Shown piece by piece: positions 37,960-58,281 of a DNA stretch of 64,000 bases. The DNA lies in the sequence record PQ015378.1. One strand, written 5' to 3'. Made by a program: the position numbers and the translations under genes. Positions within the stretch are counted from its first letter, which is position 1; each line of letters opens with the position of its first letter. The notes beneath the pieces are model-generated. The model was given only the letters and a program-made list of their open reading frames with translations. It had not been told where the DNA came from and ran no database searches.

Positions 37960-38291
37960 TCGACATCCCAACCAATGCGGAACGCATCGCTCACAAATAT
38001 GAGCGCGAACTCGAAGTCGTCAGTGGTGGCTTGAACAACGCCATTAAGAACGATACCCTGCAGTCCAACTACAAAGATCACCGCTGGGTATCGTTTTATC
38101 TGCATGGGGATAACCGTCAACTGGACATCAGCGATGAGTTCTTTGACCATATCTCCAAGCTGTACCTCAAAGCAGGTTGGTTCCTGGAACGGCGTTATGG
38201 CGAAGAGACCACCGAAGATGAAGGTAAGCTCATTGCTATCGATTGCTTCGTTGCAAGTAAAAGCTCGGTCGATGCGGCCAACGCAGAATAA
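37953..38291 (+). CDS. hypothetical protein
   Basis: GAGGG RBS. Confidence 0.7.
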   Translation: MVIDIPTNAERIAHKYERELEVVSGGLNNAIKNDTLQSNYKDHRWVSFYLHGDNRQLDISDEFFDHISKLYLKAGWFLERRYGEETTEDEGKLIAIDCFVASKSSVDAANAE

Positions 38292-38312
38292 TACTCACCG
38301 TGCAATAGTATG
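38287..38312 (+). promoter_or_regulatory. middle-type promoter overlapping a stop codon
   Basis: AATAATACT-N8-AATAGTATG matches six - strand copies. Confidence 0.7.
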
Positions 38313-38314
38313 TA

Positions 38315-38428
38315 AAACGAACCGGAGTGCAGCGGAACATCTCCCAGCTTAAGCTTACCCGTCAGCCAGCTGGTGCCGGGTGCACTCCACCTATTTATAG
38401 AGCCAGACTTCGAGTCTGGTTTTATGCC
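38315..38428 (+). ncRNA. stand-alone ~100-nt structured sRNA
   Basis: no ORF between promoter and terminator; GGAGTGCA/TGCACTCC outer helix and CCAGCT/AGCTGG inner helix; ends in CCAGAC-TTCG-A-GTCTGG-TTTT. Confidence 0.6.
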
Positions 38429-38445
38429 GTCTTAAGGAGACAGCT

Positions 38446-38679
38446 ATGACTACCGAAACCAAAAAGCCGTCGTACTGGGCCAAAGTATTCAAAGAGATCG
38501 GCATGGTCTGTTTGGTGGTGCTGGGCTATCACTTGTTCAGCTGGGGTATCGAGATCCGCTACGGTCTGGAGGTGAAAGAGCCACAGACTTGGGGCTCGAT
38601 CATCGGCACGTTTTTCACCCTGATGGGTTTCTATATCCTGGGTAACGTCATGGTTGAGAAGTTCAAGGGGGACAAATGA
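38446..38679 (+). CDS. two-TM membrane protein
   Basis: AAGGAG RBS. Confidence 0.75.
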   Translation: MTTETKKPSYWAKVFKEIGMVCLVVLGYHLFSWGIEIRYGLEVKEPQTWGSIIGTFFTLMGFYILGNVMVEKFKGDK

Positions 38680-39416
38680 CTTACATTGTCAACGATGGAA
38701 AGACCATGATCGCCGACTGTTTGGTGGTCGAACGAAATACCGGCACCCGTACACTGGGTCGTCTCCCAACCCTAGAGAACGGTTACCTGGATCTGCACGG
38801 ACAGGCCAAGGGTGTAGACGTCTACTATAACGACTGCCACAAGATCATCTTCCATCCAACTGCCACCCATGAAGGCAAGCGGATCAAAACGATGGCCTTT
38901 GCTGGTTCTGTTGGTAACGTCTGGGACCTGCTGAATGCCCTGGACGCAGGGGTTGACCTGGCCGACTGGTTCAAGGTCGAAGTTAACATCCAGCCTGTCG
39001 AAGAACGTCGGTTGTTCAACGGTGAGACGTCGATGATGTTTACCTTGGAGGATGGCGAGATTTTCATCGCTCGTCTCCGTGGTAAGTCCATCGACCTCAG
39101 TAACATGCGCTGGGCTCACCTGGGCAGTGGCATTGATGCAGTTAACAGTGCGAACGAGTTCATCCCCAATCGCTTCAAAGGGGAAAACACTGAACTGACT
39201 GCGTTGGAAGCTTTCGCTATTGCGTGCGCTCACACCAACAACGTCAGTCGTAAGTTCGACTACTTCATCCATGCTACGGGTGAATACAAGCAGAACCAGG
39301 AACTATCCACCAAACAACTCAAGTGGATCCTGGCCCGTGTACAGAAGCGTATGGATCTTACCCGGATCTATAAAGACATCCAATACGCCAATAACATCTG
39401 GGGTGTAAAGAAATGA
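38676..39416 (+). CDS. hypothetical protein
   Basis: ATGA coupling; 246 aa. Confidence 0.75.
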   Translation: MTYIVNDGKTMIADCLVVERNTGTRTLGRLPTLENGYLDLHGQAKGVDVYYNDCHKIIFHPTATHEGKRIKTMAFAGSVGNVWDLLNALDAGVDLADWFKVEVNIQPVEERRLFNGETSMMFTLEDGEIFIARLRGKSIDLSNMRWAHLGSGIDAVNSANEFIPNRFKGENTELTALEAFAIACAHTNNVSRKFDYFIHATGEYKQNQELSTKQLKWILARVQKRMDLTRIYKDIQYANNIWGVKK

Positions 39417-39574
39417 CACTCTTCGGTGTGGGTCTGTTGGTCCTCCTGATCGGGATGGCCGCTTCTTCTCTTTGTCTCGCTATTGGTGGTTACCTGGCAG
39501 ACTACAAACAAGCATGGCGCTGGAACTTCACCATTATGGGTGTTGGGGCCATGCTCATGATCGTGGGGCACTAA
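39413..39574 (+). CDS. 53-aa membrane protein
   Basis: read manually: MTLFGVGLLVLLIGMA...; ATGA coupling. Confidence 0.6.
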   Translation: MTLFGVGLLVLLIGMAASSLCLAIGGYLADYKQAWRWNFTIMGVGAMLMIVGH

Positions 39575-39718
39575 ATGGACAATCCCTTACAGGAGCGAAT
39601 GTTTCGTCGTCAGAAAGCTCGTCGGCTCGACACCGCTCAACGTTTTGTCATGAAGGCGTTCATTACCTTCGTGGTTCTCTTTTCTCTCTACGAATTAGGG
39701 GTAGCTTTAAGTGGCTGA
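39575..39718 (+). CDS. 47-aa membrane protein
   Basis: read manually: MDNPLQERMF...LSG. Confidence 0.5.
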   Translation: MDNPLQERMFRRQKARRLDTAQRFVMKAFITFVVLFSLYELGVALSG

Positions 39719-40037
39719 ATATATCGTCATCGGTTTCATAGCAGAGGTTGTCATTCTCTGGCTCGGCATGCACGCTTGGCGTTGGCGTATCTCGAAGACC
39801 TATGTCAAGAGCGAAGCTGTAATTGCTGAACTGATCTGCGATCAGCCGAACTGGGCAAAACCACTGCTTCGCCAATCGCTGGAAGCCAAAGACTGGCAGA
39901 AGCATTACAACACAATGACCATCCACCACAAGCGCGCTTGGCCGATCATTGTGACAGCATCGATTATCTTCCTGGTCAGTATACTGGCTATGATCGGTGC
40001 CATCATCGGTGATGTCATGGGTTGGATCACGCTGTAA
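39711..40037 (+). CDS. two-TM membrane protein
   Basis: GTG start; two TMs. Confidence 0.65.
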   Translation: MAEYIVIGFIAEVVILWLGMHAWRWRISKTYVKSEAVIAELICDQPNWAKPLLRQSLEAKDWQKHYNTMTIHHKRAWPIIVTASIIFLVSILAMIGAIIGDVMGWITL

Positions 40038-40044
40038 CGCATCC

Positions 40045-40063
40045 AATCTCAGATCTATATTAC
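40045..40063 (+). promoter_or_regulatory. phiKZ-type early promoter
   Basis: AATCTCAGATCTATATTAC, identical to 16174-16192. Confidence 0.8.
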
Positions 40064-40104
40064 GTTAGTGCAATAACCCCCAATCCCACAAAAGGAATCC
40101 TGCA

Positions 40105-40278
40105 ATGCAACTTGAATCCACCCGCATGTACACCCTGGAAATCAAAGACCTGAACGGCAACGAAGTCACCACCGTTACCCAACAGGGCATGGAAATCAAC
40201 GCGATGTATCCTGGCCTGGTCGTCGGTCAAACTGTCCGCGACTACAAGATGTTCATCGTCGTTCCGTTCGGAGCCTAA
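40105..40278 (+). CDS. 57-aa early protein
   Basis: AAGGA RBS; read manually, MQLESTRMYTLEIK... Confidence 0.65.
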   Translation: MQLESTRMYTLEIKDLNGNEVTTVTQQGMEINAMYPGLVVGQTVRDYKMFIVVPFGA

Positions 40279-40280
40279 GT

Positions 40281-40796
40281 ATGGCACGCTTGAAAGAGCT
40301 GGCCGCTGTCTACGCGGATGAAGACAAATGCATCCCTCTCGAATATTTCACCCCAACAGGTGAAATCATCCGTGGTGTGGTGCAGCGTGTACTGGATAAC
40401 GATGTGTGTCTTGTCGTCACTCAGTATGTTGACCAAGCAATGACTGTGAAAGTTGAGACTCATGACTTCGCTGGTCCGGCTCGCCCAGGTACGTGGTGTT
40501 TGTCACGCACTGCAAATGCGATGCACGCTTCTCTGGGGGATCCTAAGTTCAGTGAGATCACGGCAAAAAGCCAGCAGATCGTTGAGCTGACCTGGGGTGT
40601 GATGAACCAGTTCTTCACTCCGAAGCTTGCAACGTTCAAGTCGTGGGATGGCCATGATCTTCTGAATGTTGCTGGTTTCATCCAGTTGTCGGAAGGTACC
40701 GTTGATCGTTCTGGGTTCATCATTCGAACCGATGGCACGCCACCAGAGTTCGTGAAGTTCCTGTCGAAAACCGCGGTACTGACTTACTTCAAGTAA
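40281..40796 (+). CDS. hypothetical protein
   Basis: GGAG RBS. Confidence 0.7.
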   Translation: MARLKELAAVYADEDKCIPLEYFTPTGEIIRGVVQRVLDNDVCLVVTQYVDQAMTVKVETHDFAGPARPGTWCLSRTANAMHASLGDPKFSEITAKSQQIVELTWGVMNQFFTPKLATFKSWDGHDLLNVAGFIQLSEGTVDRSGFIIRTDGTPPEFVKFLSKTAVLTYFK

Positions 40797-40800
40797 GACG

Positions 40801-40847
40801 GCATAAAGCCTCCACCTTCGGGTGGAGGCAATATGTTATTTTTTTTG
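40801..40847. terminator. terminator at the strand-switch point
   Basis: GCCTCCACC-TTCG-GGTGGAGGC plus T-tract; convergent gene blocks. Confidence 0.85.
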
Positions 40848-42713: not shown

Positions 42714-42721
42714 GGTGCACC

Positions 42722-43129: not shown

Positions 43130-43138
43130 TGCGGTTTC

Positions 43139-44580: not shown

Positions 44581-44582
44581 GG

Positions 44583-45848
44583 TTATCCCTTCACGCAGAG
44601 GACTTGTTTGAGAGTGTGGACGATGTCGACCAGTTCAGCCTGAGCTGCCATCACGTCATCGATGTTCTTGTAGGCCTTTGGAGTTTCGTCCAGTACGCCT
44701 TCATCCTTACGGCACTCGATACCTGCAGTGTCACGGATATGATCTTCCAGAGTGAAGGTACGCTCTGCCGCCTTACGGGACATGATACGACCTGCGCCGT
44801 GGGAGCACGAGCAGAAGGACTCACGGTTACCCTTACCACGCACGATGAACGACTTGGCACCCATCGACCCAGGGATGATCCCCAACGTACCTTCATGAGC
44901 CGCTACGGCGCCCTTACGGGTAACCAGTACGTTCTCACCGAAGTGACGTTCTTCGGACACGTAGTTGTGGTGACAGTTGATCGCTTCCATGTCGGTATCG
45001 ATCGGGAGACCCAGAGTGCGGTGGATGGCATCCAGGGTAGCATGCATCATCACGGTACGGTTCAGCGCTGCGAAGCGTTGGGCCCAGGTTACTGCTTCCA
45101 GGTAATCGTTGTAGTACTTCGATCCCTGAGGTAGATAAGCCAGGTCTTGGTCAGGCAGGTTGATAAAGAAGCGACGCATCTCTTCTTTAGCCATGTTGAT
45201 GAAATAAGTCCCGATAGCGTTACCGATACCACGTGAACCAGAGTGGAGCATTACCCACACACGTTGTTCTTCGTCCAGACAGAGTTCAACGAAGTGGTTG
45301 CCTGTCCCAAGAGTACCGATGTGATTCCAGGCACGGTTTGCGGCTTTGCCGAGTTTCGGGTGGCGAGCAACGATCTGGTCCAGATGCACGCGGAGCTTGG
45401 TAGCTTCATCACGAACTGCTTTGACTGGATGATCGAAGACTTTCACCGAACCCCATGCACCGCGGTCCATTGGACCACCGTTATCCGTACGACCATGCGG
45501 TACGGCCGCTTCGATAGCTGCGCGTACGTGCCCCAGGGAATCCGGCAGGTCTTCTGCGCGGGCGTTCAGACGATACGCAGCCATACCACAACCCAGATCA
45601 ACACCTACGGCGGCTGGGATGATCGCACCGACAGTGGAGATCACCGAACCGATGGTTGCACCTTTACCGACGTGAACGTCAGGCATTACTGCCAGGTGGG
45701 ACTTGATGAATGGCAGGGCAGCCAGGTTCTTCAGCTGTTTGATTGCGTCTGGTTCGACTGGTACGCCGACGGTCCAGGCTTTGATCGGCTTGGAACCTTG
45801 TTCTGGTTCACCACCGAGAATTTCGAAAGTGCGTTTCACTTGTTTCAT
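44583..45848 (-). CDS. rtcB: RtcB RNA ligase (3'-phosphate/2',3'-cyclic phosphate to 5'-OH)
   Basis: MPDVH, GVDLGCG, GTLGTGNHF, HSGSRG, HHNY, RKGA, PGSMG, SHGAGR, DETPKAYK motifs. Confidence 0.96.
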   Translation of the reverse strand: MKQVKRTFEILGGEPEQGSKPIKAWTVGVPVEPDAIKQLKNLAALPFIKSHLAVMPDVHVGKGATIGSVISTVGAIIPAAVGVDLGCGMAAYRLNARAEDLPDSLGHVRAAIEAAVPHGRTDNGGPMDRGAWGSVKVFDHPVKAVRDEATKLRVHLDQIVARHPKLGKAANRAWNHIGTLGTGNHFVELCLDEEQRVWVMLHSGSRGIGNAIGTYFINMAKEEMRRFFINLPDQDLAYLPQGSKYYNDYLEAVTWAQRFAALNRTVMMHATLDAIHRTLGLPIDTDMEAINCHHNYVSEERHFGENVLVTRKGAVAAHEGTLGIIPGSMGAKSFIVRGKGNRESFCSCSHGAGRIMSRKAAERTFTLEDHIRDTAGIECRKDEGVLDETPKAYKNIDDVMAAQAELVDIVHTLKQVLCVKG

Positions 45849-45875: not shown

Positions 45876-46217
45876 TTAAGCGCGTTTTACAAAACCGAAA
45901 CTGAGCACGTAACGTGTGCCTTTAGTCACGGTAGTTACACTGTGTGTTGCGATGTCTGGTCGGAACAGAGTAAAGAACCGATTGCTGATGATTACTTCAT
46001 CATGCTCCGGGACACCACCAGCTTTCGCATTCCACAGGTAGATGTTCAGACGGTAGTGTCGATGGTTTGGCGCAGGATCACGATGTCGTGGAATACCTGA
46101 ACCTACGGGATAACGCAGCAGGTACAGATCCCACTTAAACCGACTGAAGAACTTCCAACGATTCAGAAGCTCTAACTTTTCATAGCCGGTACCTTGACGG
46201 CCAGCTTCCCATTTCAT
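45876..46217 (-). CDS. minimal 2OG-Fe(II) oxygenase
   Basis: LLRYPVGSGIPRHRD (HxD), THSV (distal His), TRYVLS (2OG-binding Arg). Confidence 0.8.
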   Translation of the reverse strand: MKWEAGRQGTGYEKLELLNRWKFFSRFKWDLYLLRYPVGSGIPRHRDPAPNHRHYRLNIYLWNAKAGGVPEHDEVIISNRFFTLFRPDIATHSVTTVTKGTRYVLSFGFVKRA

Positions 46218-46229
46218 CGAACACCTCCG

Positions 46230-46595
46230 TTAGTTATTGCGTGGGTGGTACAGATCGTTCAGTACCCAACCCCATTGGCCGATGAATTCCAGTTCTGGAT
46301 ATTTCAGGCTCGGTCGTTGGATAGCCCGACTGTTATTGTGGTTGTGGATAACGTCACGCATTTGAGAACCGTAATGCATCCACGACAGATGTAGACGACC
46401 CATGATGTCTGGATCCGCCTCTATCAGCATGTTCTGGTAGAGCTCGTACTCCACTTCATGCTGTGCCAGAAACTCGACCGTTTGAATATGGCCCATGTGT
46501 ACTGAAGGAGACTTACGAGAAGTCTCGGATTCGAGCATATCGAAATGCCGCTCACGATTGATCAGAAGCAACTTGCGGTCGAAATCAGAAAGCAT
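46230..46595 (-). CDS. hypothetical protein
   Basis: GGAG RBS. Confidence 0.7.
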   Translation of the reverse strand: MLSDFDRKLLLINRERHFDMLESETSRKSPSVHMGHIQTVEFLAQHEVEYELYQNMLIEADPDIMGRLHLSWMHYGSQMRDVIHNHNNSRAIQRPSLKYPELEFIGQWGWVLNDLYHPRNN

Positions 46596-46609
46596 GTGGA
46601 CTCCGTATA

Positions 46610-47125
46610 TCAGTTGGCTGGTACGTCAATTTCTTCACATGGTACCAGGGGAAGGGTTTCTTCCATGTCGTTGATGGCTTTGGTGATCGCCTCGTCAATG
46701 TACAGGAACTGGACAAATCGGTGATACTGGGATACCTTACCGGAGTCAATGTAGTTCATGTAGTGGTGACAGCCTTCGAACATACGCTCGAAGAACAGCT
46801 CCACCGTGCGGTGGAACAAGTCGATGTGTTCGCGTGTCATGTTTGCACCGCGAACGATGACCATCGAGTTATCTTTGTTCAGTTTGTGCTCTTCACGAAT
46901 TTGTGCTTCCGCTTTACGGAATGCATCGTGCAGATCCAGGAAACCTTCTTTACGTTCCTCACCCCAGATGCGATCGAACACCAGTGCGCCGAGGACCACG
47001 TGGTGATCGAGTTCTTCGGTGGTCAGTGTGCTACCGAGCTCCAGGGATTTGGAGCACAGGGGAACCCCGAGTTGATCTTTCAGTTCAGGGGTGAGGAATT
47101 TACCGTACTGCTTGAGATGCTTCAT
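46610..47125 (-). CDS. hypothetical protein
   Basis: AGG RBS. Confidence 0.7.
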   Translation of the reverse strand: MKHLKQYGKFLTPELKDQLGVPLCSKSLELGSTLTTEELDHHVVLGALVFDRIWGEERKEGFLDLHDAFRKAEAQIREEHKLNKDNSMVIVRGANMTREHIDLFHRTVELFFERMFEGCHHYMNYIDSGKVSQYHRFVQFLYIDEAITKAINDMEETLPLVPCEEIDVPAN

Positions 47126-47156
47126 TGTAAGTACCTGTTTGGAGTTGACGAAATAA

Positions 47157-47174
47157 GGGAGGCTTTCGCCTCCC
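47157..47174 (-). terminator. hairpin terminator
   Basis: GGGAGGC-GAAA-GCCTCCC-TTATTT on the - strand. Confidence 0.75.
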
Positions 47175-47179
47175 TTAAA

Positions 47180-47503
47180 TCAGGACCGACCCTTTAACTG
47201 CATGAAACGATGTAGATTCAGTAGAGCTTCAGTATCTACGCTTCCACGATCAACCATCTCCATTAACTGGGTGATGGTGACTTCCTCTGGTTCCCACTGA
47301 TCTTCCAAGCCGTAGCAGGAACAGTGAGATCCATGTACTTCGAAATACTTGCCATCCTTGTAGTACAGCACGTAAGAACTACCGGAGTAGTCCTCGTAAG
47401 TGTAGTCTGCATGGATAACATGAGCTCCGTCGAGATCGTTGGCCGCGTTTCCACGGTAGTTGCTGATTACATCGGACACATCAGAAAAATCGTTGTAAAA
47501 CAT
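47180..47503 (-). CDS. conserved-looking acidic phage protein (GSHCSCYG motif)
   Basis: YEDYSGSSYVLY...GSHCSCYGLEDQWEPEE; own promoter at 47573-47600. Confidence 0.7.
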   Translation of the reverse strand: MFYNDFSDVSDVISNYRGNAANDLDGAHVIHADYTYEDYSGSSYVLYYKDGKYFEVHGSHCSCYGLEDQWEPEEVTITQLMEMVDRGSVDTEALLNLHRFMQLKGRS

Positions 47504-47572
47504 TTTGGTGATTCCATTGACAAGGCGAGATTGCCCGCTGCATTCTCTTTTAATAGTCAATGGTCAGTCCTG

Positions 47573-47600
47573 TATACTGTATCGCCACCAGTATTTTATT
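47573..47600 (-). promoter_or_regulatory. middle-type promoter
   Basis: AATAAAATACT-N8-TACAGTATA. Confidence 0.7.
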
Positions 47601-47602
47601 AC

Positions 47603-47632
47603 GGCATAGAGCCTCCCGAAGGGAGGCTCTAT
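47603..47632 (-). terminator. hairpin terminator closing the ncRNA cassette
   Basis: ATAGAGCCTCCC-TTCG-GGAGGCTCTAT. Confidence 0.8.
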
Positions 47633-47886
47633 TAATAGTGTTATGCATGCCTTTCAAGGTCGGCCAACTACACCCCCAGAAACCAGAGGTCATGTTCAGC
47701 ATGCCGCCGCAGCGCTAATCAATTCAGAATCGTCCCGATGCGAATCCGCACCATCTGGGGACGACCTCAAAAGAAGAGCTAACCACGTTCCGATCGTGCG
47801 CCGAGTCAAGGCTGGCACGAACTGTGGTATAGAGATTGACAGTCTCTGTTATATGTCGCTCTACGAAACCACTAAGCGTAGGCCTT
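47633..47886 (-). ncRNA. stand-alone ~250-nt structured RNA with a tRNA-Asp anticodon-loop mimic
   Basis: own promoter and terminator; no - strand ORF of 60 aa or more; many helices including AGAGA-CTGTCAA-TCTCT. Confidence 0.65.
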
Positions 47887-47887
47887 A

Positions 47888-47917
47888 CATACTATCATGA
47901 TGACAGTAATTTATTTC
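47888..47917 (-). promoter_or_regulatory. middle-type promoter overlapping the radical SAM gene stop
   Basis: GAAATAAATTACT-N8-GATAGTATG. Confidence 0.75.
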
Positions 47918-48804
47918 AGGAACGTTCCACAGCTAGCTTGAACGTCAGTGCCCACGCGTGGGATCACTTTCACCCGAGCGTCGGGCAAACGAGAACGGAT
48001 GTATCCAGCCAGGTATTGGATATGTCCTTCAACCGGTTCTTTCGAGTAATGTCCCACTGGTGGGTTGTAACGAACGATGTTCCAGTTGACATCGACAGCG
48101 TATTCCTTGATCGCATCAACAACACGCTTTACATCACCCAGGGAATCATTCTCCCCGTCAATGAATGCGTAATGGATCTTTGGCTTCTTACCAGTAGCTT
48201 GCTGCCATTCGAACAACTTATCCAAACCAGCTTCCGGGTTCAGGGCTTTAGGGAGCCACCGTTTGCGGAACTTTGGATTCATGCTGTAGATTGAGTAATA
48301 GATCTCTGGGTACACTGCGGGGTTCTTGAAGATCTGGTAGAACTCGATGCCCGTTACCTCATGTGGAATGATCGTCGATATCAGGAACTTGTATTCCAGT
48401 CCGTGTGACATCGCTAGGTCAGCGAGGCGTTCCAGTACTTCGTCTGCGTTGTCCAAGAAGATCTTATTAGCCAGTGGCTCGCCACGGGCCATGAAGTTGA
48501 AGTGAACCATCTTCGCAGGGACGCCACCTTTACGACATTGCTCAGCGTAGTACTGCATGACTTGTCCAGCTTGTTGTAGATATTCGTCAACGGTAACATC
48601 ACGTGCTTTGTTCTGACCTGTGGCAGTCAGCCAACACATCCGGCATGCTTTCTCGCAACCGGTCTGTGAAGACAGGTAAATGATGAAGTAATCGTCAACC
48701 CGGCGAACGAAACGTGCCTCGATCATCCCGTCGTCTACACGACATTCGAAGTTAACTGATTGGTCGAGTTGGGAATGATGCTCTTTGAAGATTAGTTGCG
48801 ACAT
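47911..48804 (-). CDS. RlmN/Cfr-like radical SAM protein
   Basis: SSQTGCEKACRMC (CxxxCxxC), MARGEPL, NIVRYN, GTDVQASCG (counterpart of RlmN GxDIxAACG). Confidence 0.85.
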   Translation of the reverse strand: MSQLIFKEHHSQLDQSVNFECRVDDGMIEARFVRRVDDYFIIYLSSQTGCEKACRMCWLTATGQNKARDVTVDEYLQQAGQVMQYYAEQCRKGGVPAKMVHFNFMARGEPLANKIFLDNADEVLERLADLAMSHGLEYKFLISTIIPHEVTGIEFYQIFKNPAVYPEIYYSIYSMNPKFRKRWLPKALNPEAGLDKLFEWQQATGKKPKIHYAFIDGENDSLGDVKRVVDAIKEYAVDVNWNIVRYNPPVGHYSKEPVEGHIQYLAGYIRSRLPDARVKVIPRVGTDVQASCGTFLK

Positions 48805-48828: not shown

Positions 48829-48854
48829 GCATAAAGGTCATCCGAAGATGACCC
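48829..48854 (-). terminator. terminator of tRNA operon 1
   Basis: GGTCATC-TTCG-GATGACC-TTTATGCC. Confidence 0.8.
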
Positions 48855-48864
48855 AATGCATGTA

Positions 48865-48940
48865 TGGTGCCGCCAACAAGGATCGAACTCGTGACCTTCT
48901 CATTACAAGTGAGCTGCTCTACCGACTGAGCTATAGCGGC
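48865..48940 (-). tRNA. tRNA-Thr(TGT)
   Basis: 76-nt cloverleaf, loop CTTGTAA, encoded CCA. Confidence 0.95.
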
Positions 48941-49028
48941 TGGAGCTGAGAGCTGGATTCGAACCAGCGCGTGCGTTTGAGCAAAAGGATTTGCAATCCC
49001 CTACATTCGTCCACTCTGCCATCTCAGC
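48941..49028 (-). tRNA. tRNA-Cys(GCA) with long variable arm
   Basis: 88 nt; loop TTGCAAA, U73 discriminator, CCA; variable hairpin TGC-TCAAAC-GCA. Confidence 0.85.
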
Positions 49029-49036
49029 GAATATAA

Positions 49037-49110
49037 AGGAACAGGATCGTCCAGGGTAGCTACACCCCCAACCCACTTGTGACCGAAACTAACTCGGACA
49101 ACCTGTTCCT
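49037..49110 (-). ncRNA. structured spacer RNA within the tRNA operon
   Basis: AGGAACAGG-TTGTCC ... GGACGA-T-CCTGTTCCT closing helix with internal hairpins. Confidence 0.45.
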
Positions 49111-49115
49111 ATGTT

Positions 49116-49203
<88 letters not shown>

Positions 49204-49209
49204 TGAAAT

Positions 49210-49295
49210 TGGTGGGGATGGAGGGACTCGAACCCACACGGTCTAAGACCGCTGGAACCTAAATCCAGTGCGTCTACCAATTTCGCCACATCCCC
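49210..49295 (-). tRNA. tRNA-Leu(TAG)
   Basis: class II cloverleaf, loop TTTAGGT, CCA. Confidence 0.95.
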
Positions 49296-49299: not shown

Positions 49300-49328
49300 T
49301 ATATCATTACGCGGGGAGTATTTCTTTA
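49300..49328 (-). promoter_or_regulatory. middle-type promoter of tRNA operon 1
   Basis: TAAAGAAATACT-N8-AATGATATA, beginning at the upstream stop codon. Confidence 0.75.
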
Positions 49329-51339: not shown

Positions 51340-51363
51340 CATAAAACCCAGCCTAGGCTGGGC
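51340..51363 (-). terminator. terminator of tRNA operon 2
   Basis: CCCAGC-CTAG-GCTGGG-TTTTATGC. Confidence 0.75.
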
Positions 51364-51374
51364 GATATGTTGTT

Positions 51375-51461
51375 TGGTACCGGAAGCGAGATTCGAACTC
51401 GCAATCCTCAAGGGCGGGAGGGCTTAAAGCTCCAGTGTATAGCCAATTCCACCATTCCGGC
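51375..51461 (-). tRNA. tRNA-Leu(TAA)
   Basis: class II cloverleaf resembling leuZ-type; loop TTTAAGC; C31-C39 mismatch; CCA. Confidence 0.85.
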
Positions 51462-51464
51462 AAT

Positions 51465-52310
51465 GTCGGTCCAACTTCCAGGATTGAAGGCCCCAGTCTC
51501 CCGTAGATCATCGTGGGGATAGATCGCGGTTGGATCGCTTTTCATCCTAGTCTGTAGCAACCCCTGACGGCTTTCGCTAGAGGGGAAACCCGGAGACTAG
51601 GTCTATCTATCTAACTCACCTCTAAGCAGCTTCAGGATGCGATGGAGGGTAAGTATTCAGGAATAGGTGCATATCAGGCAACCCCACCGGGTACGCCCAT
51701 ATGCGCGTGGGAAACGCCCTTCCCAATTGGAGCTATGACCACCCGAAGGCTCACTGCTAAGCATGGCCCAGGAGTCCCTTTACGGGGGATGACCTGGGGG
51801 AGCTTCACGTGACGGGACTGTCACCTTCTATGGCGCTGTATTCCAGCAGCTTCACGTAAGCCCAGTGACGGAATCTACTAATCCGTTGTAGCCACCTTAT
51901 CTCGCTTCGGTGGTAATGCGCGTGTCTTAAACCGGGATCATCCAAGACGCTTTAGACAATTGCTCAGGGTACGGGACTCGCCTTCCCATGCTAGTCGCTG
52001 GCTATGATCATTCCAGCAACCGTCGTAGGGTTCGATAGTCTCGTTAGCATGCAGGCTTTGCCCTAGGTAGTTGGGACATCGCTAACGAACTTGCCCACGC
52101 TTTTGATCGCGAGGGACTCTCCACCGCTAGCTGCGATGGGTTTGTAAGAGGTTGATGGAACGATCCTCTACCGTCATCTATTCGGACTCCGGCGACCTTT
52201 TCAGCGCAGTGGGGTGGAGTGCACTTACCCAACACCCTGCCATGGCTCTTACGAACTAGGTTGCCCAAGGCGGGTTAGGCCAGGGGACTTGCAGACCTAA
52301 GTCTGTATGG
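51465..52310 (-). ncRNA. giant (~850 nt) structured non-coding RNA, GOLLD/ROOL-like context
   Basis: no credible ORF; more than 15 helices read by eye; co-transcribed between tRNA-Ser and tRNA-Leu. Confidence 0.75.
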
Positions 52311-52313
52311 AAC

Positions 52314-52403
52314 TGGAGGCAAGACTGGGATTTGAACCCAGGGGGCCTTCGAAGGCCCGTCCCCTTAGCAAGGGGATGTGTTAAACCACTCCACCATCTT
52401 GCC
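52314..52403 (-). tRNA. tRNA-Ser(GCT)
   Basis: class II cloverleaf, loop TTGCTAA, CCA. Confidence 0.93.
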
Positions 52404-52408
52404 GAAAC

Positions 52409-52484
52409 TGGCGGGCTAGACTGGACTCGAACCAATAACACGTGGCTTTGGAGGCCACTGTTCTGCCAATTGAACTACTAACCC
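52409..52484 (-). tRNA. tRNA-Trp(CCA)
   Basis: 76 nt, loop CTCCAAA, G73, CCA. Confidence 0.93.
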
Positions 52485-52503
52485 GATGAGGCGTAACCTC
52501 TCG

Positions 52504-52533
52504 TATACTATTACCCTCGGAGTATTTTATTTC
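52504..52533 (-). promoter_or_regulatory. middle-type promoter of tRNA operon 2
   Basis: GAAATAAAATACT-N8-AATAGTATA immediately after a stop codon. Confidence 0.8.
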
Positions 52534-53990: not shown

Positions 53991-54024
53991 GGTCGTCACC
54001 ATTTACCTGTATACAAAGGATAAC

Positions 54025-54047
54025 GGCATAAAGGAGCCGAAGCTCCT
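54025..54047 (-). terminator. hairpin terminator
   Basis: GGAGC-TTCG-GCTCC-TTTATGCC. Confidence 0.75.
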
Positions 54048-54243
54048 AAGGGTTTCGAATACCGTAGTCAATCACCCGGTTGAGTTGTTCTTGTGTTGGG
54101 ATACGTTGACGATGTCGTTCAGCACATTCCATATCGAACTCCGCCACACGCTTACGAGATTCTTCAATCCGTTGTGCTCTTTCCTCAGGGGTCTGATTAG
54201 GTAACATGTTGTTAGCCAGGTCGATCAAAGCTTTCAGACTCAT
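54046..54243 (-). CDS. small helical paralog 4
   Basis: C-terminus RQRIPTQEQLNRVIDY; ATGA coupling. Confidence 0.7.
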   Translation of the reverse strand: MSLKALIDLANNMLPNQTPEERAQRIEESRKRVAEFDMECAERHRQRIPTQEQLNRVIDYGIRNP

Positions 54244-54407
54244 AGCGAAATCACCCGCTCTAATAGTTCTCGGGAAACTTCCTGGGCTTTGAATTCACGG
54301 CCCAGACGTTCATTGGTTTGACGCATTCGATCTTGTGCAGCTTGCAAACTGGAAGCATGGGTTCCATTACGGGTACGTGCTTCCTCTATCAGTTTCTCTA
54401 GGGTCAT
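54240..54407 (-). CDS. small helical paralog 3 (55 aa, not in the ORF track)
   Basis: read manually: MTLEKLIEEARTRNGTHASSLQAAQDRMRQTNERLGREFKAQEVSRELLERVISL. Confidence 0.7.
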   Translation of the reverse strand: MTLEKLIEEARTRNGTHASSLQAAQDRMRQTNERLGREFKAQEVSRELLERVISL

Positions 54408-54414
54408 GATTCAC

Positions 54415-54594
54415 CTAACAACGTTCGTCCCAGTTCTTCTGGACATCGGATGGAATGGGAATACCATGTCGGTCTTGATCTTCCCAGGCTTGGAACATAG
54501 CGACCTTAGCCTCGTATCGCTCACGATCTTTACGATCCTCTTCCTGACGCCATTTGTGGAAGTCGAATGAGGGCGGTTCGATTAGAGGGTACAT
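54415..54594 (-). CDS. 59-aa charged protein (not in the ORF track)
   Basis: read manually: MYPLIEPPSFDFHKWRQEEDRKDRERYEAK...DERC. Confidence 0.55.
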   Translation of the reverse strand: MYPLIEPPSFDFHKWRQEEDRKDRERYEAKVAMFQAWEDQDRHGIPIPSDVQKNWDERC

Positions 54595-54755
54595 GTTTTG
54601 GCCAACAGTTCTGGAGTTACTCGTTGGGCTTCGAAATCAGCTTCGGCTTTACGATTGAACTCGATGGATCTTTCACGGGCGGCCTTTAGTCTAATAGCTT
54701 TGGTGGCACCCATTCGTTTACGAGCAGCGTTACAGAGTTCCTCCAGTCCACTCAT
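54582..54755 (-). CDS. small helical paralog 2
   Basis: MSGLEELCNAARKR...AQRVTPELLAKTCTL. Confidence 0.7.
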   Translation of the reverse strand: MSGLEELCNAARKRMGATKAIRLKAARERSIEFNRKAEADFEAQRVTPELLAKTCTL

Positions 54756-54937
54756 AACGTACACCGTTTCTCTAAGACCTCGGGGGTCATGCGCTGTGCT
54801 TTCATTTGCGCTTCGAGTTGTCCGTTCAGTGCGACCATGCGCCCACGCCCATATGAACGGAATTGTTCTTCAGTCATACCACGTTGTTTCGCTGCTCTAC
54901 CACGTAAGCGGTCTATCAATCCAGCTGAAAGAGCCAT
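54752..54937 (-). CDS. small helical paralog 1
   Basis: GAGGA RBS; ...AQRMTPEVLEKRCTL. Confidence 0.7.
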   Translation of the reverse strand: MALSAGLIDRLRGRAAKQRGMTEEQFRSYGRGRMVALNGQLEAQMKAQRMTPEVLEKRCTL

Positions 54938-54988
54938 GTTAGTTCCTCACGGTATTTGTACTATAAATCTAAGTACCCAGTAATATCC

Positions 54989-55015
54989 GGCATAAAGGGG
55001 GAACCCCCTTATGTC
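54989..55015. terminator. hairpin terminator
   Basis: CATAAAGGGGG-AA-CCCCCTTATG. Confidence 0.65.
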
Positions 55016-55733
55016 AATCAGGAACGTATTCCAATACTGGTTTCCAACCTCGGTTGAAGTCTGCCCCTGTCAATGGATGACGATAGAGACCTTTGTATGC
55101 TCCACTAGCATTACCCCGCACCAATCCGTCAGTGCCGGAAGCGATCTCTTGGATGATAGGGCTAGAACCACCAGTACTGTTTACGCCAGTCAAACCGAGT
55201 GCTGTTGGACTCATGTTAGCCAATGCAGGACCCTCAAGGTCAGTACCTGCCGAATCTGCCATCAGGCCATACATGATCTTGTTCCACTCAGTGCCGACTG
55301 TTTGTGGTCCACCAGCTGCGTTGTTACTTCCGGTATATGGATTAACATTACAGCCATTCATCAACCGAACTCGGAACTTGTATCCTTGGATCTCGATGAT
55401 TTTGTTCTGTGCTGCAGTGACGACCCCAATGCCGTTGAGTAGGTTCCATGACACCGTATTGCGCACAGACGATTTAGGGATATATAGTACGTTCTCTTTG
55501 TATGCCACTTTCACCCAACCCAGACCTGTGGCAGCTATAGCGGCGGCGGTAGGCTTAGTACCGAATGTCATACCCACAGCGGTAACTAGATCATCGTACT
55601 TGATGAGTGCGCTCTCGGCCATTTCACCAAAGAAACCTAATTGTGCGTCACCCTTCAGGATAACGTCTGGACCGGGCAACCCTTTCGGATAATCCCCTTT
55701 GTCTTTCATAACGTTTAGCAGTTGTTCGTTCAT
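55014..55733 (-). CDS. MNEQLL putative virion protein (single copy of the domain repeated in 49326-51308)
   Basis: GPDVILKGD..LGFFGE, WVKVAYKENVLYIPK, FRVRLMNG, EWNKIMY, GWKPVLE. Confidence 0.8.
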   Translation of the reverse strand: MNEQLLNVMKDKGDYPKGLPGPDVILKGDAQLGFFGEMAESALIKYDDLVTAVGMTFGTKPTAAAIAATGLGWVKVAYKENVLYIPKSSVRNTVSWNLLNGIGVVTAAQNKIIEIQGYKFRVRLMNGCNVNPYTGSNNAAGGPQTVGTEWNKIMYGLMADSAGTDLEGPALANMSPTALGLTGVNSTGGSSPIIQEIASGTDGLVRGNASGAYKGLYRHPLTGADFNRGWKPVLEYVPD

Positions 55734-55761
55734 GGTAAATTCCCCTCTAACATACCATAAC

Positions 55762-55790
55762 GACATAAGAGCATCCCGGAGGATGCTCTC
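55762..55790 (-). terminator. terminator of tRNA operon 3
   Basis: GAGCATCC-TCCG-GGATGCTC-TTATGTC. Confidence 0.75.
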
Positions 55791-55796
55791 ATTAAT

Positions 55797-55872
55797 TGGC
55801 TCCGAGACCAGGGTTCGAACCTGGGACCAACGGATTAACAGTCCGCTGCTCTACCGACTGAGCTATCTCGAA
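55797..55872 (-). tRNA. tRNA-Asn(GTT)
   Basis: 76 nt, loop CTGTTAA, G73, CCA. Confidence 0.95.
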
Positions 55873-55917
55873 TTGAAACTGTGGTGGTCGTATACTATTG
55901 TACACAACTCACCGAAA

Positions 55918-55993
55918 TGGTCGGAGTGGCAGGACTCGAACCTACGACCTCCTGGTCCCAAACCAGGCGCCCTACCAACTAGGCTACACTCCG
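55918..55993 (-). tRNA. tRNA-Pro(TGG)
   Basis: 76 nt, C1-G72, loop TTTGGGA, CCA. Confidence 0.95.
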
Positions 55994-56000
55994 ATGAAAC

Positions 56001-56077
56001 TGGCGGTTCCTACGGGGCTCGAACCCGTGACCTCTCGCGTGACAGGCGAGCGCTCTAACCGACTGAGCTAAGGAACC
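56001..56077 (-). tRNA. tRNA-Asp(GTC)
   Basis: 77 nt, loop CTGTCAC, G73, CCA. Confidence 0.95.
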
Positions 56078-56079
56078 TT

Positions 56080-56241
56080 TTAAGCGTGACGCTTGCGGCT
56101 AAGTGCGTAGTCCGCATCATTAACCGCTTCTTTGAGAGCTTGACGATCAAGCTTGAGATCTTTCCAACTGAGTCTGCTGCAGCAGCGACAATCAGCTGGG
56201 CCCATGTCCTTAAGAGGACGCTGATGAATCTTCACTTTCAT
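56080..56241 (-). CDS. 53-aa basic CxCC protein inside the tRNA operon
   Basis: GGAGAG RBS; MKVKIHQRPLKDMGPADCRCCSRL... Confidence 0.55.
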   Translation of the reverse strand: MKVKIHQRPLKDMGPADCRCCSRLSWKDLKLDRQALKEAVNDADYALSRKRHA

Positions 56242-56257
56242 GACAAGCTCTCCGAAA

Positions 56258-56344
56258 TGGTGGATCAAGGCTGGAATTGAACCGCTAGCCGGGGGCGGGG
56301 TGGTTACAGCACCCTGTCAGTAGCCATCTGACTCTACAAGATCC
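56258..56344 (-). tRNA. atypical tRNA-Tyr(GTA)-like gene
   Basis: GGGTG-CTGTAAC-CACCC anticodon arm, A73-CCA, TTCAATT T-loop; irregular acceptor, D and T stems. Confidence 0.65.
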
Positions 56345-56350
56345 GGAATG

Positions 56351-56442
56351 CATTGATAGCGCTCTAACCAGTAAGCTAACAGCCCTGTTCGATAGGCGGG
56401 CCTTCCGAGTCAAGGGAATTGAACCCAAGTTCTCTATCAATG
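56351..56442 (-). ncRNA. circularly permuted tRNA-like RNA (YrlA-type topology)
   Basis: order CATTGATAG - T arm - closed acceptor-like hairpin - D arm - CTATCAATG. Confidence 0.7.
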
Positions 56443-56477
56443 TCAAGATTAGTCATCGCAAGCGACAACTGCTCTCG

Positions 56478-56507
56478 TATACTATTACACACAAAGTATT
56501 TTATTTC
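56478..56507 (-). promoter_or_regulatory. middle-type promoter of tRNA operon 3
   Basis: GAAATAAAATACT-N8-AATAGTATA(CGAG). Confidence 0.8.
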
Positions 56508-56584
56508 TACGAGAGGGAACAACTGTGACTGGATCGCACTATCGCACTGATCCAATCACATATAGTTGTATACAAAACAACAAC

Positions 56585-57454
56585 TTACCCAATGAACACC
56601 ACTCTGGTATTCACGCGACCCAGTCGTGCCAACACACGGTACAGCTTGTTGATGTTGAAGTCGTCACTGTGGAAGCGACGATAAGCGTTAGTGATCACGA
56701 TGGTGTGGAAGTTCTTGTGGAACTGAGGGAAGTGTTCCAGCAGGTAGTCGTATGCCCACTTGGACTCCCAGAACCACTTACGGTGGGTAGTCATTACCTG
56801 AGCGCCATCACCCGGTTGAGACATGTCGATCGAGATCTCTTCATCCGGTTCAGCCGATACGAATGCAAGTGCCTTACGGACATCGGTCGTGTTGATCAGT
56901 TGTTGTTCCACGATGTTCTTGTGGAGGGTATCCATCTCCATCAGCTTGTACAGCACGGAGTAGCTGGAACGGTCGGTACGAGAATGCATGTCATCTACAT
57001 CGATGTGCACGTAGCCGTCGCCCAGGTTTTCCAGGAATACTTTCTGGAATTGCTTGAGGTCACCCAATGCTGGGCCGACCAGGAAAGAGGTATTGTCACG
57101 GACTTGTTTCCAGTCCGGCACCTGATCATAAGTCAGATGGGCAAACGAAGGCTTGTAGGTGATACTCGCCAGATGCATGGCGGCTACTTGGTCCGGTTGA
57201 TCGTAGACCAGTTCTTCACTATCACGTTCCGGTTCAGAGAACCAATAATGCAATGCATCGTAACGCACGTAAGTGCTCTGACCAATCAGTTGATCGACTA
57301 AACGCTTGGATGATGGCATCAGGTGGTAGAGGCCGGTGTACGAATTATCAGCACTGCAGACCGCGTAAGTGGTCAGTGGCATGAACTCGATTGGTTTTCC
57401 GTCATCCTCTAGAGCGACACGGCATTCTTGCATTGTGGAGCGGAGGCTTTTCAT
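56585..57454 (-). CDS. hypothetical protein
   Basis: AAGGA RBS; 289 aa. Confidence 0.75.
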   Translation of the reverse strand: MKSLRSTMQECRVALEDDGKPIEFMPLTTYAVCSADNSYTGLYHLMPSSKRLVDQLIGQSTYVRYDALHYWFSEPERDSEELVYDQPDQVAAMHLASITYKPSFAHLTYDQVPDWKQVRDNTSFLVGPALGDLKQFQKVFLENLGDGYVHIDVDDMHSRTDRSSYSVLYKLMEMDTLHKNIVEQQLINTTDVRKALAFVSAEPDEEISIDMSQPGDGAQVMTTHRKWFWESKWAYDYLLEHFPQFHKNFHTIVITNAYRRFHSDDFNINKLYRVLARLGRVNTRVVFIG

Positions 57455-57534
57455 TTCTGTATCCTTTCCCCTTACTGGGGTGTGGTGTCAGTATAAGTAG
57501 CGGTATTGCTACACAGCATAACTTCCCGAGTATT

Positions 57535-57939
57535 TTAACTCGGGAAGGTACCAGTGTAGATGTCGTAGAAGGCTGTACCGTAACGATCATTAGGCCAGCG
57601 CTTCTTGAATGCTTCGCGTGCTTCTTGCATTTGTTCTGGAGTCAGGATGATTTCATTGTAATCGAAATCATGCCAACCTAGGGTAACGAACCGTCCGGTC
57701 TTCGGATGGTAATAGAGATACTCGCCGCTATCGACAGGCATGAACAGAGTGTTCGCCTTCTCGTCCAGTTCTTTACGACGCTCGCGCTCAGCAGACAACC
57801 GCGACTCCCTTTCCAGCCAAGTCTCTTTCGGCTGCATCGATGGATACTCCACGATGTGCAGAATCGTCGGACGACGAATGTACGGGGTAGGTGCACAGAG
57901 CATGCGCATCTGTTCTTCTGTAACCAGGTATCCACTCAT
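57535..57939 (-). CDS. hypothetical protein
   Basis: ATGA coupling. Confidence 0.7.
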   Translation of the reverse strand: MSGYLVTEEQMRMLCAPTPYIRRPTILHIVEYPSMQPKETWLERESRLSAERERRKELDEKANTLFMPVDSGEYLYYHPKTGRFVTLGWHDFDYNEIILTPEQMQEAREAFKKRWPNDRYGTAFYDIYTGTFPS

Positions 57940-58112
57940 TTGCTTTTCACCGTTACGCGGTAAGCTTTGCTCCAGAGGTCTACTCGGGCAAAGGGACGGA
58001 ATTTATGGCGCCCTGCACCAACACGAATCATTTCACCGCCAGCTTCAAGTTCGATGGGTGTGACTTCGAGTTGGGAGAACAGTTTGTACACGGGGTTGAC
58101 GAGGTATTCCAT
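57936..58112 (-). CDS. small hypothetical protein
   Basis: GGAG RBS; begins MEYLVNP. Confidence 0.65.
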   Translation of the reverse strand: MEYLVNPVYKLFSQLEVTPIELEAGGEMIRVGAGRHKFRPFARVDLWSKAYRVTVKSK

Positions 58113-58132
58113 TGCTATCTCCAAATGAGCCG

Positions 58133-58160
58133 GACATAAGGCTGCCCGCAGGCAGCCCTA
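58133..58160 (-). terminator. hairpin terminator closing an sRNA cassette
   Basis: AGGGCTGCC-TGCG-GGCAGCCTT-ATGTC. Confidence 0.75.
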
Positions 58161-58250
58161 AGAGGTGAAGCCACAGAAGGATTACTTCTAGAAGCGCTCC
58201 GAGGATGCTCCGGCGAGTGACTGGTGGTGTCGAAGCATGCAGATCTTCAA
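58160..58250 (-). ncRNA. stand-alone ~100-nt sRNA candidate
   Basis: lies between a consensus promoter and a terminator; only a 16-codon ORF without a good RBS; short hairpins. Confidence 0.5.
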
Positions 58251-58251
58251 C

Positions 58252-58281
58252 TATACTATCACCCGCTGAGTATTTTATTTC
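58252..58281 (-). promoter_or_regulatory. middle-type promoter overlapping a stop codon
   Basis: GAAATAAAATACT-N8-GATAGTATA. Confidence 0.8.

Follow-up and report, generated by a model that had tools for sequence, protein, structure and literature searches.

A putative extended middle promoter heads tRNA operons, structured RNAs and the RtcB operon of the Pseudomonas jumbo phage RVTF4

It has been reported for phiKZ-like phages that transcription is independent of the host polymerase (PMC4666361, PMC7598289). Their middle promoters carry the sequence AAanTTACc centred near -24, and some of them also have the late element TATG, the G of which is +1 (PMC4666361, PMC7598289); the published middle motif of phiKZ is described as weak. 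In the long-read transcriptome of 201phi2-1 a transfer RNA (tRNA) gene, tRNA-Leu, was assigned to a middle-class promoter, and a small RNA was found directly upstream of a tRNA (PMC11512511). Here we describe a two-part sequence motif that occurs at seven sites in a 64,000-base stretch of DNA (the window), identical to bases 1-64000 of the genome of Pseudomonas phage RVTF4 (PQ015378.1; 302,537 base pairs (bp), circular, from pond water). We consider it likely that these seven sites are a strong, extended middle promoter heading tRNA operons, structured RNAs and the operon of the RNA ligase RtcB, and that the units form a co-expressed RNA module.

Phage clusters of tRNA and RNA-repair genes are usually taken to compensate for codon usage or for the cleavage of tRNAs by host defence systems. 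The RVTF4 locus resembles them in having a tRNA cluster beside RtcB and an RNA ligase; it differs from them in that tRNAs, tRNA mimics and the RtcB operon appear to stand under one shared dedicated promoter, and in that the tRNAs are interleaved with folded RNAs matching no Rfam family. Two large phage RNAs, GOLLD and ROOL, were recently shown to be RNA-only cages; to our knowledge their biology is still not known, and we are aware of no convenient genetic system for either. A tRNA mimic with comparable genomic company is YrlA, in which a long end stem encloses T-arm-like, acceptor-like and D-arm-like hairpins and which in bacteria is often linked to RtcB operons (PMC4201824).

RVTF4 is a phiKZ-like, nucleus-forming jumbo phage, because its record lists a nuclear shell protein, many virion proteins and several multisubunit RNA polymerase pieces. 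The phage was not mentioned in the literature searched, and the deposited annotation (PQ015378.1) has no tRNA or other RNA gene in the stretches examined, which included 47-57 kb. The pattern RAAWTACT-N12-RTATR has six exact matches in the genome, all on the minus strand (47573, 47888, 49300, 52504, 56478 and 58252; chance expectation 0.01), and a seventh site at 38288 on the plus strand departs from it by a single mismatch (ATAATACT). Across the whole 302,537-bp genome, assembled from the record, the strict two-part pattern is confined to these sites, the same seven that had been named in an original prediction made by a model from the window sequence. The rough consensus of the seven sites is gTAAAAWAATACT-N8-GTAATAGTATR, and in all seven the box AAAATACT or AAATTACT lies at -24 to -17, counted from the R of TATR. 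The putative promoter copies are the following (nt, nucleotides):

38288 to 38312, plus strand: copy 1 (ATAATACT-N8-CAATAGTATG), overlapping the TAA stop of the gene that ends at 38291; an orthologous copy is present in Psa21
47573 to 47597, minus strand: copy 2, 12 nt ahead of a TTG start (47560), with AGGA between; same layout in D6
47888 to 47912, minus strand: copy 3, overlapping the TAA stop of the RlmN-like gene
49300 to 49324, minus strand: copy 4, its final A 5 nt ahead of the tRNA-Leu start
52504 to 52528, minus strand: copy 5, with orthologous copies in D6, Psa21 and the loci L018, L034, L412 and L417
56478 to 56502, minus strand: copy 6, a pattern match heading the tRNA-mimic unit
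58252 to 58276, minus strand: copy 7, overlapping the TAA stop of the gene that ends at 58275

The copies always lie upstream of the RNA or gene that they precede and on the same strand, often directly 3' of a terminator hairpin; from about 40.8 to 63.7 kb of the window the genes run on the minus strand. D6 and Psa21, the two isolates closest to RVTF4, have the motif at orthologous positions, as do related contigs of uncultured jumbo phages. Thirteen related loci yielded 50 unique pattern matches, about 40 of them clear motif copies, as against a single match to the same pattern in 2.9 Mb of unrelated loci, and the consensus over the 13 loci is ..gTAAaAaAaTACT-N3-tgtGTAATAgTATA-cgagag. Stop codons are overlapped at 38288, 47888 and 58252 and adjoined at 49300 (1 nt) and 52504 (5 nt), neither being the case at 56478 and 47573; the five contacts with stop codons that had been predicted were thus found. 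The idea that the promoters are planted on stop codons as a special feature did not survive: TAA is in the conserved A-rich upstream part of the motif (gTAAaAaAaTACT), also where no gene ends, and the overlap therefore needs no special explanation.

As predicted, six of the seven copies head non-coding RNA. Copy 38288 heads a structured leader of ~105 nt with a terminator hairpin, followed by small genes, and copy 58252 a leader of ~110 nt (5' hairpin, terminator), likewise followed by small genes. Downstream of 56478 come a short 5' hairpin, a permuted tRNA mimic, a tRNA-Tyr-like gene, an open reading frame (ORF) of 53 codons, which occurs also in Psa21, and then tRNA-Asp, Pro and Asn. Copy 52504 heads tRNA-Trp, tRNA-Ser, an RNA of 852 nt and tRNA-Leu(UAA), then a terminator; copy 49300 heads tRNA-Leu, Ser, an 87-nt hairpin, Cys, Thr and a hairpin, then the RlmN-like gene; and copy 47888 heads an RNA of ~290 nt with its own terminator. 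The seventh copy, 47573, heads a five-gene protein operon which starts 12 nt on and has RtcB as its last recognisable member. The tRNA genes and tRNA-like genes of these units are:

48865 to 49295, minus strand: tRNA operon Leu(TAG)-Ser(TGA)-[87-nt hairpin, 49029-49115]-Cys(GCA)-Thr(TGT), found by ARAGORN
51375 to 51461, minus strand: tRNA-Leu(TAA), directly after the large RNA, with a terminator hairpin next
52314 to 52484, minus strand: tRNA-Trp(CCA) and tRNA-Ser(GCT), with a 19-nt leader ahead
55797 to 56077, minus strand: tRNA-Asp(GTC), tRNA-Pro(TGG) and tRNA-Asn(GTT), with a promoter remnant or hairpin at 55873-55917
56258 to 56344, minus strand: degenerate tRNA-Tyr(GTA)-like gene, its acceptor stem interrupted by two U-U mismatches, its T arm weak and its CCA encoded; Psa21 and L034 have homologues

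At default settings ARAGORN detected 10 tRNAs in the window. The eleventh, the degenerate tRNA-Tyr(GTA) at 56258-56344, was missed by default ARAGORN and by Rfam and was found by ARAGORN at a lowered threshold only; together with tRNA-Leu(TAA), the lowest-scoring Rfam tRNA match (39.5 bits), it would account for the 11 tRNAs with two atypical members that had been foreseen. The set is rich in GUN anticodons. In the gap between tRNA-Pro and tRNA-Asn (55873-55917, minus strand) the downstream half of the promoter (GTACAATAGTATACGA) is present without the AATACT box and folds as a strong hairpin (z -5.3); the promoter at the corresponding position of Psa21 is complete. In D6 the real tRNA-Leu(UAA) has just ahead of it an apparent 5' fragment of a tRNA-Leu (locus L009, 15640-15690), for which RVTF4 has no counterpart. 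An HNH endonuclease gene, also missing from RVTF4, follows directly after tRNA-Leu(UAA) in D6 (L009, 15846-16568) and in Psa21 (L010, 19428-20150).

Compared with the middle promoters of phiKZ and 201phi2-1, phages of the same family, the RVTF4 motif is alike in the sequence of the box, in its distance to the start and in having TATR at the start, so that the match to the phiKZ middle promoter claimed in the original prediction is borne out. It differs from the published promoters in its much greater length and far stronger conservation (about 35 informative positions), in the additional GTAATAG between the two elements and the preferred CGAGAG start, and in that its strict form is found only at stable-RNA units and the RtcB operon. 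The AAanTTACc-like box ~24 nt ahead of the start is accompanied by multisubunit RNA polymerases encoded in the genome and by a separate early promoter class. Since the tRNAs begin 3-5 nt past TATR in several units (49300 in RVTF4; 18719 and 17630 in D6), the transcription start should not be further downstream than TATR. One of the related loci (L413) is phage 201phi2-1 itself, and a motif copy lies ~90 nt upstream of its single tRNA-Leu. Taking into account the conservation, the match to the published motif, the position of the start and the report on the tRNA-Leu of 201phi2-1, we read the seven sites as a strong form of the middle promoter of this clade, a reading well supported by the sequence comparisons.

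The early class, distinct from the motif, is represented by 20 exact copies of CAGATC/AAGCC-TATATTAC-N5-TG in the genome, on the plus strand only; the class is similar to the AT-rich early promoters of phiKZ-like phages. Four of the copies are in the window, and 16 further ones elsewhere in the genome:

10426, plus strand: early-type promoter
16185, plus strand: early-type promoter
23713, plus strand: early-type promoter
40056, plus strand: early-type promoter

The co-regulation that had been proposed holds in so far as tRNA operons and other RNA units alike are headed by one middle-type promoter class, and RtcB is tied to them by the same promoter. The class is not exclusive to non-coding RNA: copy 2 precedes the RtcB operon, and weaker variants, with a spacing 1 nt longer or an altered box, are found ahead of ribonucleotide reductase and other protein genes (63724 on the minus strand; 63774, 86120 and 91197 on the plus strand). 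The loose pattern is no commoner than in shuffled sequence, and statistical distinctness is limited to the strict form. In the intergenic region of ribonucleotide reductase (63673-63971) the variants at 63724 (minus) and 63774 (plus) are divergent; the latter is TTTTACT-N9-CATAGTATG, its spacing 1 nt longer, and this copy and the start of a leader of ~170 nt are kept in D6 and Psa21. Outside the window, at 91197-91222 on the plus strand (27197 in locus L003), a close variant, AATACC-N8-GTATAGTATA-CGGAGAG, is followed by a 5' hairpin; it is intergenic, just ahead of an early promoter and of the gene starting at 91305.

Terminator hairpins were seen at 47610-47640, 48835-48860, 51340-51370, 55770-55800, 58140-58160 and 38400-38425, followed by TTTATGCC or TTATGTC and not by a run of T. 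The TTTATGCC-type strings and the cores of the hairpins (CCCTTCGGGG) are among the most over-represented 10-mers genome-wide. The TATG in the strings behind the terminators may double as a late start site; the strings contain the late-promoter TATG and are therefore consistent with the virion genes downstream of them.

The largest of the RNAs, R850, lies between two tRNA genes and contains a module resembling part of the 23S ribosomal RNA (rRNA):

51462 to 52313, minus strand: R850, a large structured RNA of 852 nt, flanked by tRNA-Ser(GCT) and tRNA-Leu(TAA)
51801 to 51870, minus strand: module in R850 resembling 23S helices 19-20 (~E. coli nt 291-343), with cmscan large-subunit (LSU) rRNA matches in two members

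Between RVTF4 and D6, blocks of R850 reach 93% identity, a conservation equal to that of the tRNAs, while the genes on either side are below the megablast range. A profile search of the fetched loci gave homologues in Psa21 and seven further viral contigs besides D6, and the ten homologues have pairwise identities of 47-86%. In every locus with an available 3' flank, some 10-30 nt (about 47 nt in Psa21) separate the end of the RNA from tRNA-Leu(UAA), and the RNA is usually preceded by tRNA-Trp or Trp-Ser, the conserved order being Trp(-Ser), large RNA, Leu(UAA). Reduced forms exist: some relatives have a piece of ~140 nt, and in 201phi2-1 ~90 nt separate promoter and tRNA. The RNAalifold structure of the ten sequences has 131 pairs, 90% of them canonical as against 34-43% when the 3' partners were shifted; changes on both sides occur in 62 pairs versus 17-28 after shifting, and none of 500 column shuffles reached the observed values. 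Two folds were obtained, one in which a long-range helix pairs the conserved block at the 5' end with that at the 3' end, and a second with local helices and better covariation. No conserved ORF was found in R850, the longest ORFs varying in strand, frame and place among the homologues. Scans of the window, of the RNA alone and of the relatives' loci gave no Rfam family match, GOLLD, ROOL and RNase P included, and exact 15-mer scans of metagenome and genome collections returned chance matches only and no new homologue.

The module of R850 matched LSU rRNA models at positions ~325-384 with an expectation value (E) of 3e-4 in the window and, at the homologous place, of 7e-8 in L034; the match was not listed in the scan of the RNA alone. 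A local alignment of the RVTF4 module to E. coli 23S rRNA (~291-343) scored 35 (shuffle maximum 27) and was significant for RVTF4 only. The module is present in about 6 of the 10 members (alignment A3), and compensating changes occur in its hairpin with the UGGAA loop. For the likeness to 23S rRNA the covariance-model matches in two members are better evidence than the sequence-level similarity. The corresponding part of 23S domain I is the one to which, as we take it, uL4 and uL24 bind, two proteins that join early in assembly. R850 contains five occurrences of a short G(N)GA(N)AGUCC-type string, and in L034 a partial second copy of its 5' block (6280-6400) stands upstream of the full one, in tandem with it. 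RNase P RNA, suggested to the eye by the strings AGUCC and UAGAUGA, was dropped as an identity of R850, no RNase P match being obtained at permissive thresholds. A group II intron was likewise rejected: only weak matches to a domain-1 model were seen (E 0.33 and 1.7), and these are due to the short recurring GGUGA-AGUCC string and not to membership.

Four further RNAs, of smaller size, were delimited, one within a tRNA operon and three directly behind promoter copies:

56342 to 56447, minus strand: element A, a permuted tRNA mimic of ~105 nt, with an 11-bp closing stem around three predicted hairpins
47598 to 47887, minus strand: R250, a structured RNA of ~290 nt, with a terminator hairpin at about 47610-47640
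38312 to 38420, plus strand: R38, a structured leader or small RNA of ~105 nt, closed by a terminator hairpin and TTTTATGCCG; the gene downstream starts at 38446
58140 to 58252, minus strand: R58, a conserved leader or small RNA of ~110 nt, opened by a 5' hairpin and closed by a terminator hairpin; the gene downstream starts at 58112

The original prediction had given these and the other RNA intervals as ~850, ~250, ~100, ~100 and ~75 nt. The first and the two of ~100 nt stand, the second is really ~290 nt long, and the last is the hairpin of ~87 nt.

The permuted tRNA mimic of the original prediction was recovered. A covariance model (R1, six sequences) located a single copy in each genome across seven loci, of which one duplicates another, with E 1e-30 to 1e-34, and no second copy of element A elsewhere in RVTF4. 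In 10 of the 11 pairs of the closing stem both sides have changed, a value reached in 0 of 500 shuffles. The predicted hairpins would follow in the order T-loop-like (GGGUUCAAUUCCC), acceptor-like and D-arm-like, the last with the GG of the D loop, and with the end stem this would be the layout of YrlA. Searched with the Rfam YrlA model, element A gave no match, and the weak YrlA matches in the window and in the relatives' loci fall on pairs of true tRNAs; no other Rfam family matched element A either. The Ro-binding motif GNCGAA(N)G is in none of the six element A stems (alignment A4), the strands of which differ freely, and a TROVE (Ro60/Rsr) domain was found in none of the ten neighbouring genes scanned. 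Element A may be described as a YrlA-type mimic in layout, which is a modelled likeness and not a demonstrated membership. In locus L412 it occupies a tRNA-sized slot between tRNAs.

In seven phages R250 has the RlmN/Cfr-like gene on one side and the RtcB operon with its promoter on the other. Its seven homologues share 54 predicted pairs, 89% of them canonical, with 32 covarying pairs as against 8-13 after shifting (0 of 500 shuffles). At the 5' start there is a D-arm-like hairpin with the loop UAGUGGUUU or UUGCGCGGUU; the second hairpin has a covarying 5-bp stem and a near-invariant 7-nt loop, CUGUCAA, equal to an anticodon loop with GUC and an A at position 37. The window scan gave no Rfam family match for R250. 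Among the tRNAs in which E. coli RlmN forms m2A37 is tRNA-Asp. Because of this activity and the GUC-A37 loop we infer that R250 is a candidate substrate, regulator or decoy for the RlmN-like enzyme. In R38 (six homologues) 95% of 40 pairs are canonical and 14 have changed on both sides, compared with 1-2 after shifting (0 of 500 shuffles). Neither R38 nor R58 matched an Rfam family.

The proteins encoded next to these RNAs are:

44583 to 45848, minus strand: RtcB RNA ligase (Pfam PF01139, E 4.2e-127; residues 38-421 on profile positions 1-426, full length)
45876 to 47560, minus strand: four small genes of the RtcB operon, encoding products of 126, 171, 121 and 113 amino acids, headed by copy 2
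47911 to 48804, minus strand: RlmN/Cfr-like core of a radical S-adenosylmethionine RNA methyltransferase, 297 amino acids (Cfr structure in the PDB, E 9e-11)

All three enzymes placed here by the original prediction left some trace, of unequal quality. From its sequence RtcB is certain. The 297-residue protein is a distant but consistent match to the RlmN/Cfr core: against TIGR00048 it scored 59.8 bits (E 2e-16), short of the cut-off of 290; its CX3CX2C motif and C-terminal Cys align with Cfr (9p0p, residues 71-340), and the N-terminal ~70 residues of RlmN and Cfr are absent. The 2-oxoglutarate (2OG) oxygenase is a tentative assignment, the likeness of the 113-residue product (45876-46217) to 2OG-Fe(II) oxygenases being weak at 22.4 bits (Pfam gathering threshold 27). 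Searches of Pfam, NCBIfam, PHROGs and Atlas gave no function for any of the four small proteins upstream of RtcB. The label 'integrase' of the 126-residue product (47180-47560) in the record has a thin basis, the name of a PHROG only. The order RlmN-like gene, promoter, R250, promoter, RtcB operon is conserved. A second RNA ligase, ATP-dependent and DRB0094-like (TIGR02306, E 9.5e-39, below cut-off), is encoded at 6877-8322 on the plus strand, far from the RtcB operon.

That the motif might not be a promoter at all, being instead a binding site of a regulator, an RNA-processing signal or a recombination or homing repeat, is suggested by the hairpin into which the boxless copy between tRNA-Pro and tRNA-Asn folds. 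We regard such a role as very improbable: the motif is always upstream of and on the same strand as an RNA or gene and often right behind a terminator hairpin, it matches both published phiKZ promoter elements at the right spacing, and the tRNA-Leu behind the 201phi2-1 copy was reported to be transcribed from a middle-class promoter. If the sites were promoters of another kind, namely host sigma-70 promoters from which host RNA polymerase made the tRNAs and other RNAs, TAGTAT, identical to TATAAT in 4 of 6 positions, could serve as the -10 hexamer. This reading, to which we give hardly any credence, does not fit, because 17 nt upstream the sequence reads as an A-rich run with no TTGACA-like hexamer, and tRNAs beginning 3-5 nt past the element leave no space for the normal distance from -10 to +1; moreover, phiKZ-like phages transcribe without the host polymerase (PMC4666361, PMC7598289).

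With the middle-promoter reading kept for the sites, the products may be questioned in turn. The intervals between the tRNAs could be functionless spacers, decayed tRNA genes or remnants of mobile elements, transcribed through their position in the operons. The degenerate tRNA-Tyr-like gene, the 87-nt hairpin that lacks a homologue, the HNH endonuclease genes beside tRNA-Leu in D6 and Psa21 and the variation of the large RNA from ~140 to ~850 nt among relatives would all suit this view. Set against it are the R850 blocks, which match the tRNAs in conservation while flanking genes are below the megablast range, the strong compensatory variation in four RNAs (R850, R250, R38 and the closing stem of the mimic) and a strictly conserved gene order with no conserved ORF, and we hold it to be distinctly unlikely. 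Non-conserved spacers, named in the original prediction as the finding that would speak against it, were thus not what was found for most intervals, which are conserved and folded; the 87-nt hairpin is private to RVTF4 and R58 has weak support. R850 could be a very divergent GOLLD or ROOL instead of a separate family. It is alike in phage origin, in its position in a tRNA island, in size (0.6-0.85 kb) and in an elaborate covarying structure, and the niche is the same (phage, tRNA island, 0.7-0.85 kb, many helices, a conserved and a variable part; PMC12286853). This seems improbable in view of the absence of any match at E up to 10 in the window and up to 1 in six relatives' loci, five of them with a homologue. 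Unlike GOLLD and ROOL, R850 has no detectable homology to either Rfam model, occurs in Pseudomonas jumbo phages of the nucleus-forming kind, always has tRNA-Leu(UAA) directly after it and in most members (about 6 of 10) contains the module resembling 23S helices 19-20.

Several observations weigh against our own interpretation. Purified phiKZ non-virion polymerase did not transcribe from middle promoters in vitro (PMC4666361). Read mapping yielded metagenome contigs only: cover was even and DNA-like in a wastewater run marked 'RNA?', a metatranscriptome gave a few short contigs, and over the tRNA region the matches were dominated by tRNAs of other organisms. The pairs were counted on the very alignments, small ones of 6-10 related sequences, that had served to predict the consensus structures, and the shift and shuffle controls correct only partly for this and for shared ancestry. 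The interior of element A is almost invariant, its inner hairpins resting on their likeness to T and D loops; in R58 (six homologues) 96% of the pairs are canonical, but its 3 covarying pairs were equalled by 61 of 500 shuffles. The 87-nt hairpin (49029-49115; fold z -3.8) had no homologue in the related loci, is found in RVTF4 only and could be junk. The function of the RNA set is deduced from genomic context only.

Taking these points into account, the seven sites would be a strong, extended form of the phage's own middle promoter with the start at or beside the last R, most likely read by a phage multisubunit RNA polymerase and not by the host enzyme. The units so headed would be three tRNA operons, two short terminator-ended leaders, the RNA of ~290 nt and the five-gene RtcB operon, with two more folded RNAs, of 852 nt and ~105 nt, embedded in the tRNA operons. 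Since tRNAs flank it on both sides, the 852-nt RNA would probably be excised from its precursor by RNase P and the tRNA 3'-end enzymes; the mimic may be released in the same way, given its tRNA-sized slot between tRNAs in L412. A stem-loop is predicted at the 5' end of most transcripts that do not start with a tRNA, and would stabilise them. As a guess at function, the whole would be a module of co-expressed units devoted to stable RNA and to RNA maintenance, by which translation is supported or protected in the infected cell; the large RNA and the tRNA mimics would serve as protein-binding or scaffold RNAs. That the RNAs act as decoys, scaffolds or repair substrates against tRNA-targeting defences, as the original prediction had it, is a hypothesis for which RtcB, the RlmN-like enzyme, the GUN-rich tRNA set and the tRNA mimics are circumstantial points. 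Going further, it is possible, though rather doubtful, that the RNA of 0.7-0.85 kb is a new class of large ornate phage RNA of nucleus-forming jumbo phages, cut from a tRNA precursor by tRNA-processing enzymes, whose 23S-like module binds an early-assembly ribosomal protein (uL4 or uL24) or which assembles into an RNA particle of higher order; with the ~290-nt RNA and its tRNA-Asp-like anticodon arm and with the YrlA-like mimic it would then make up an RNA layer serving host takeover or counter-defence, under the same dedicated promoter as RtcB.

RVTF4, D6 and Psa21 are cultivable, and a further large structured RNA and two tRNA-like RNAs are thus open to direct tests. The RNA set comes with a defined putative promoter, with processing signals and with conserved enzyme partners, RtcB and the RlmN/Cfr-like methyltransferase. 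This makes testable what role such RNAs have, whether phage tRNA mimics are decoys or enzyme substrates, and how stable RNAs are expressed in phiKZ-like phages, whose middle promoters remain untranscribed in vitro. A strong and compact promoter would also be a candidate expression tool for jumbo-phage systems.

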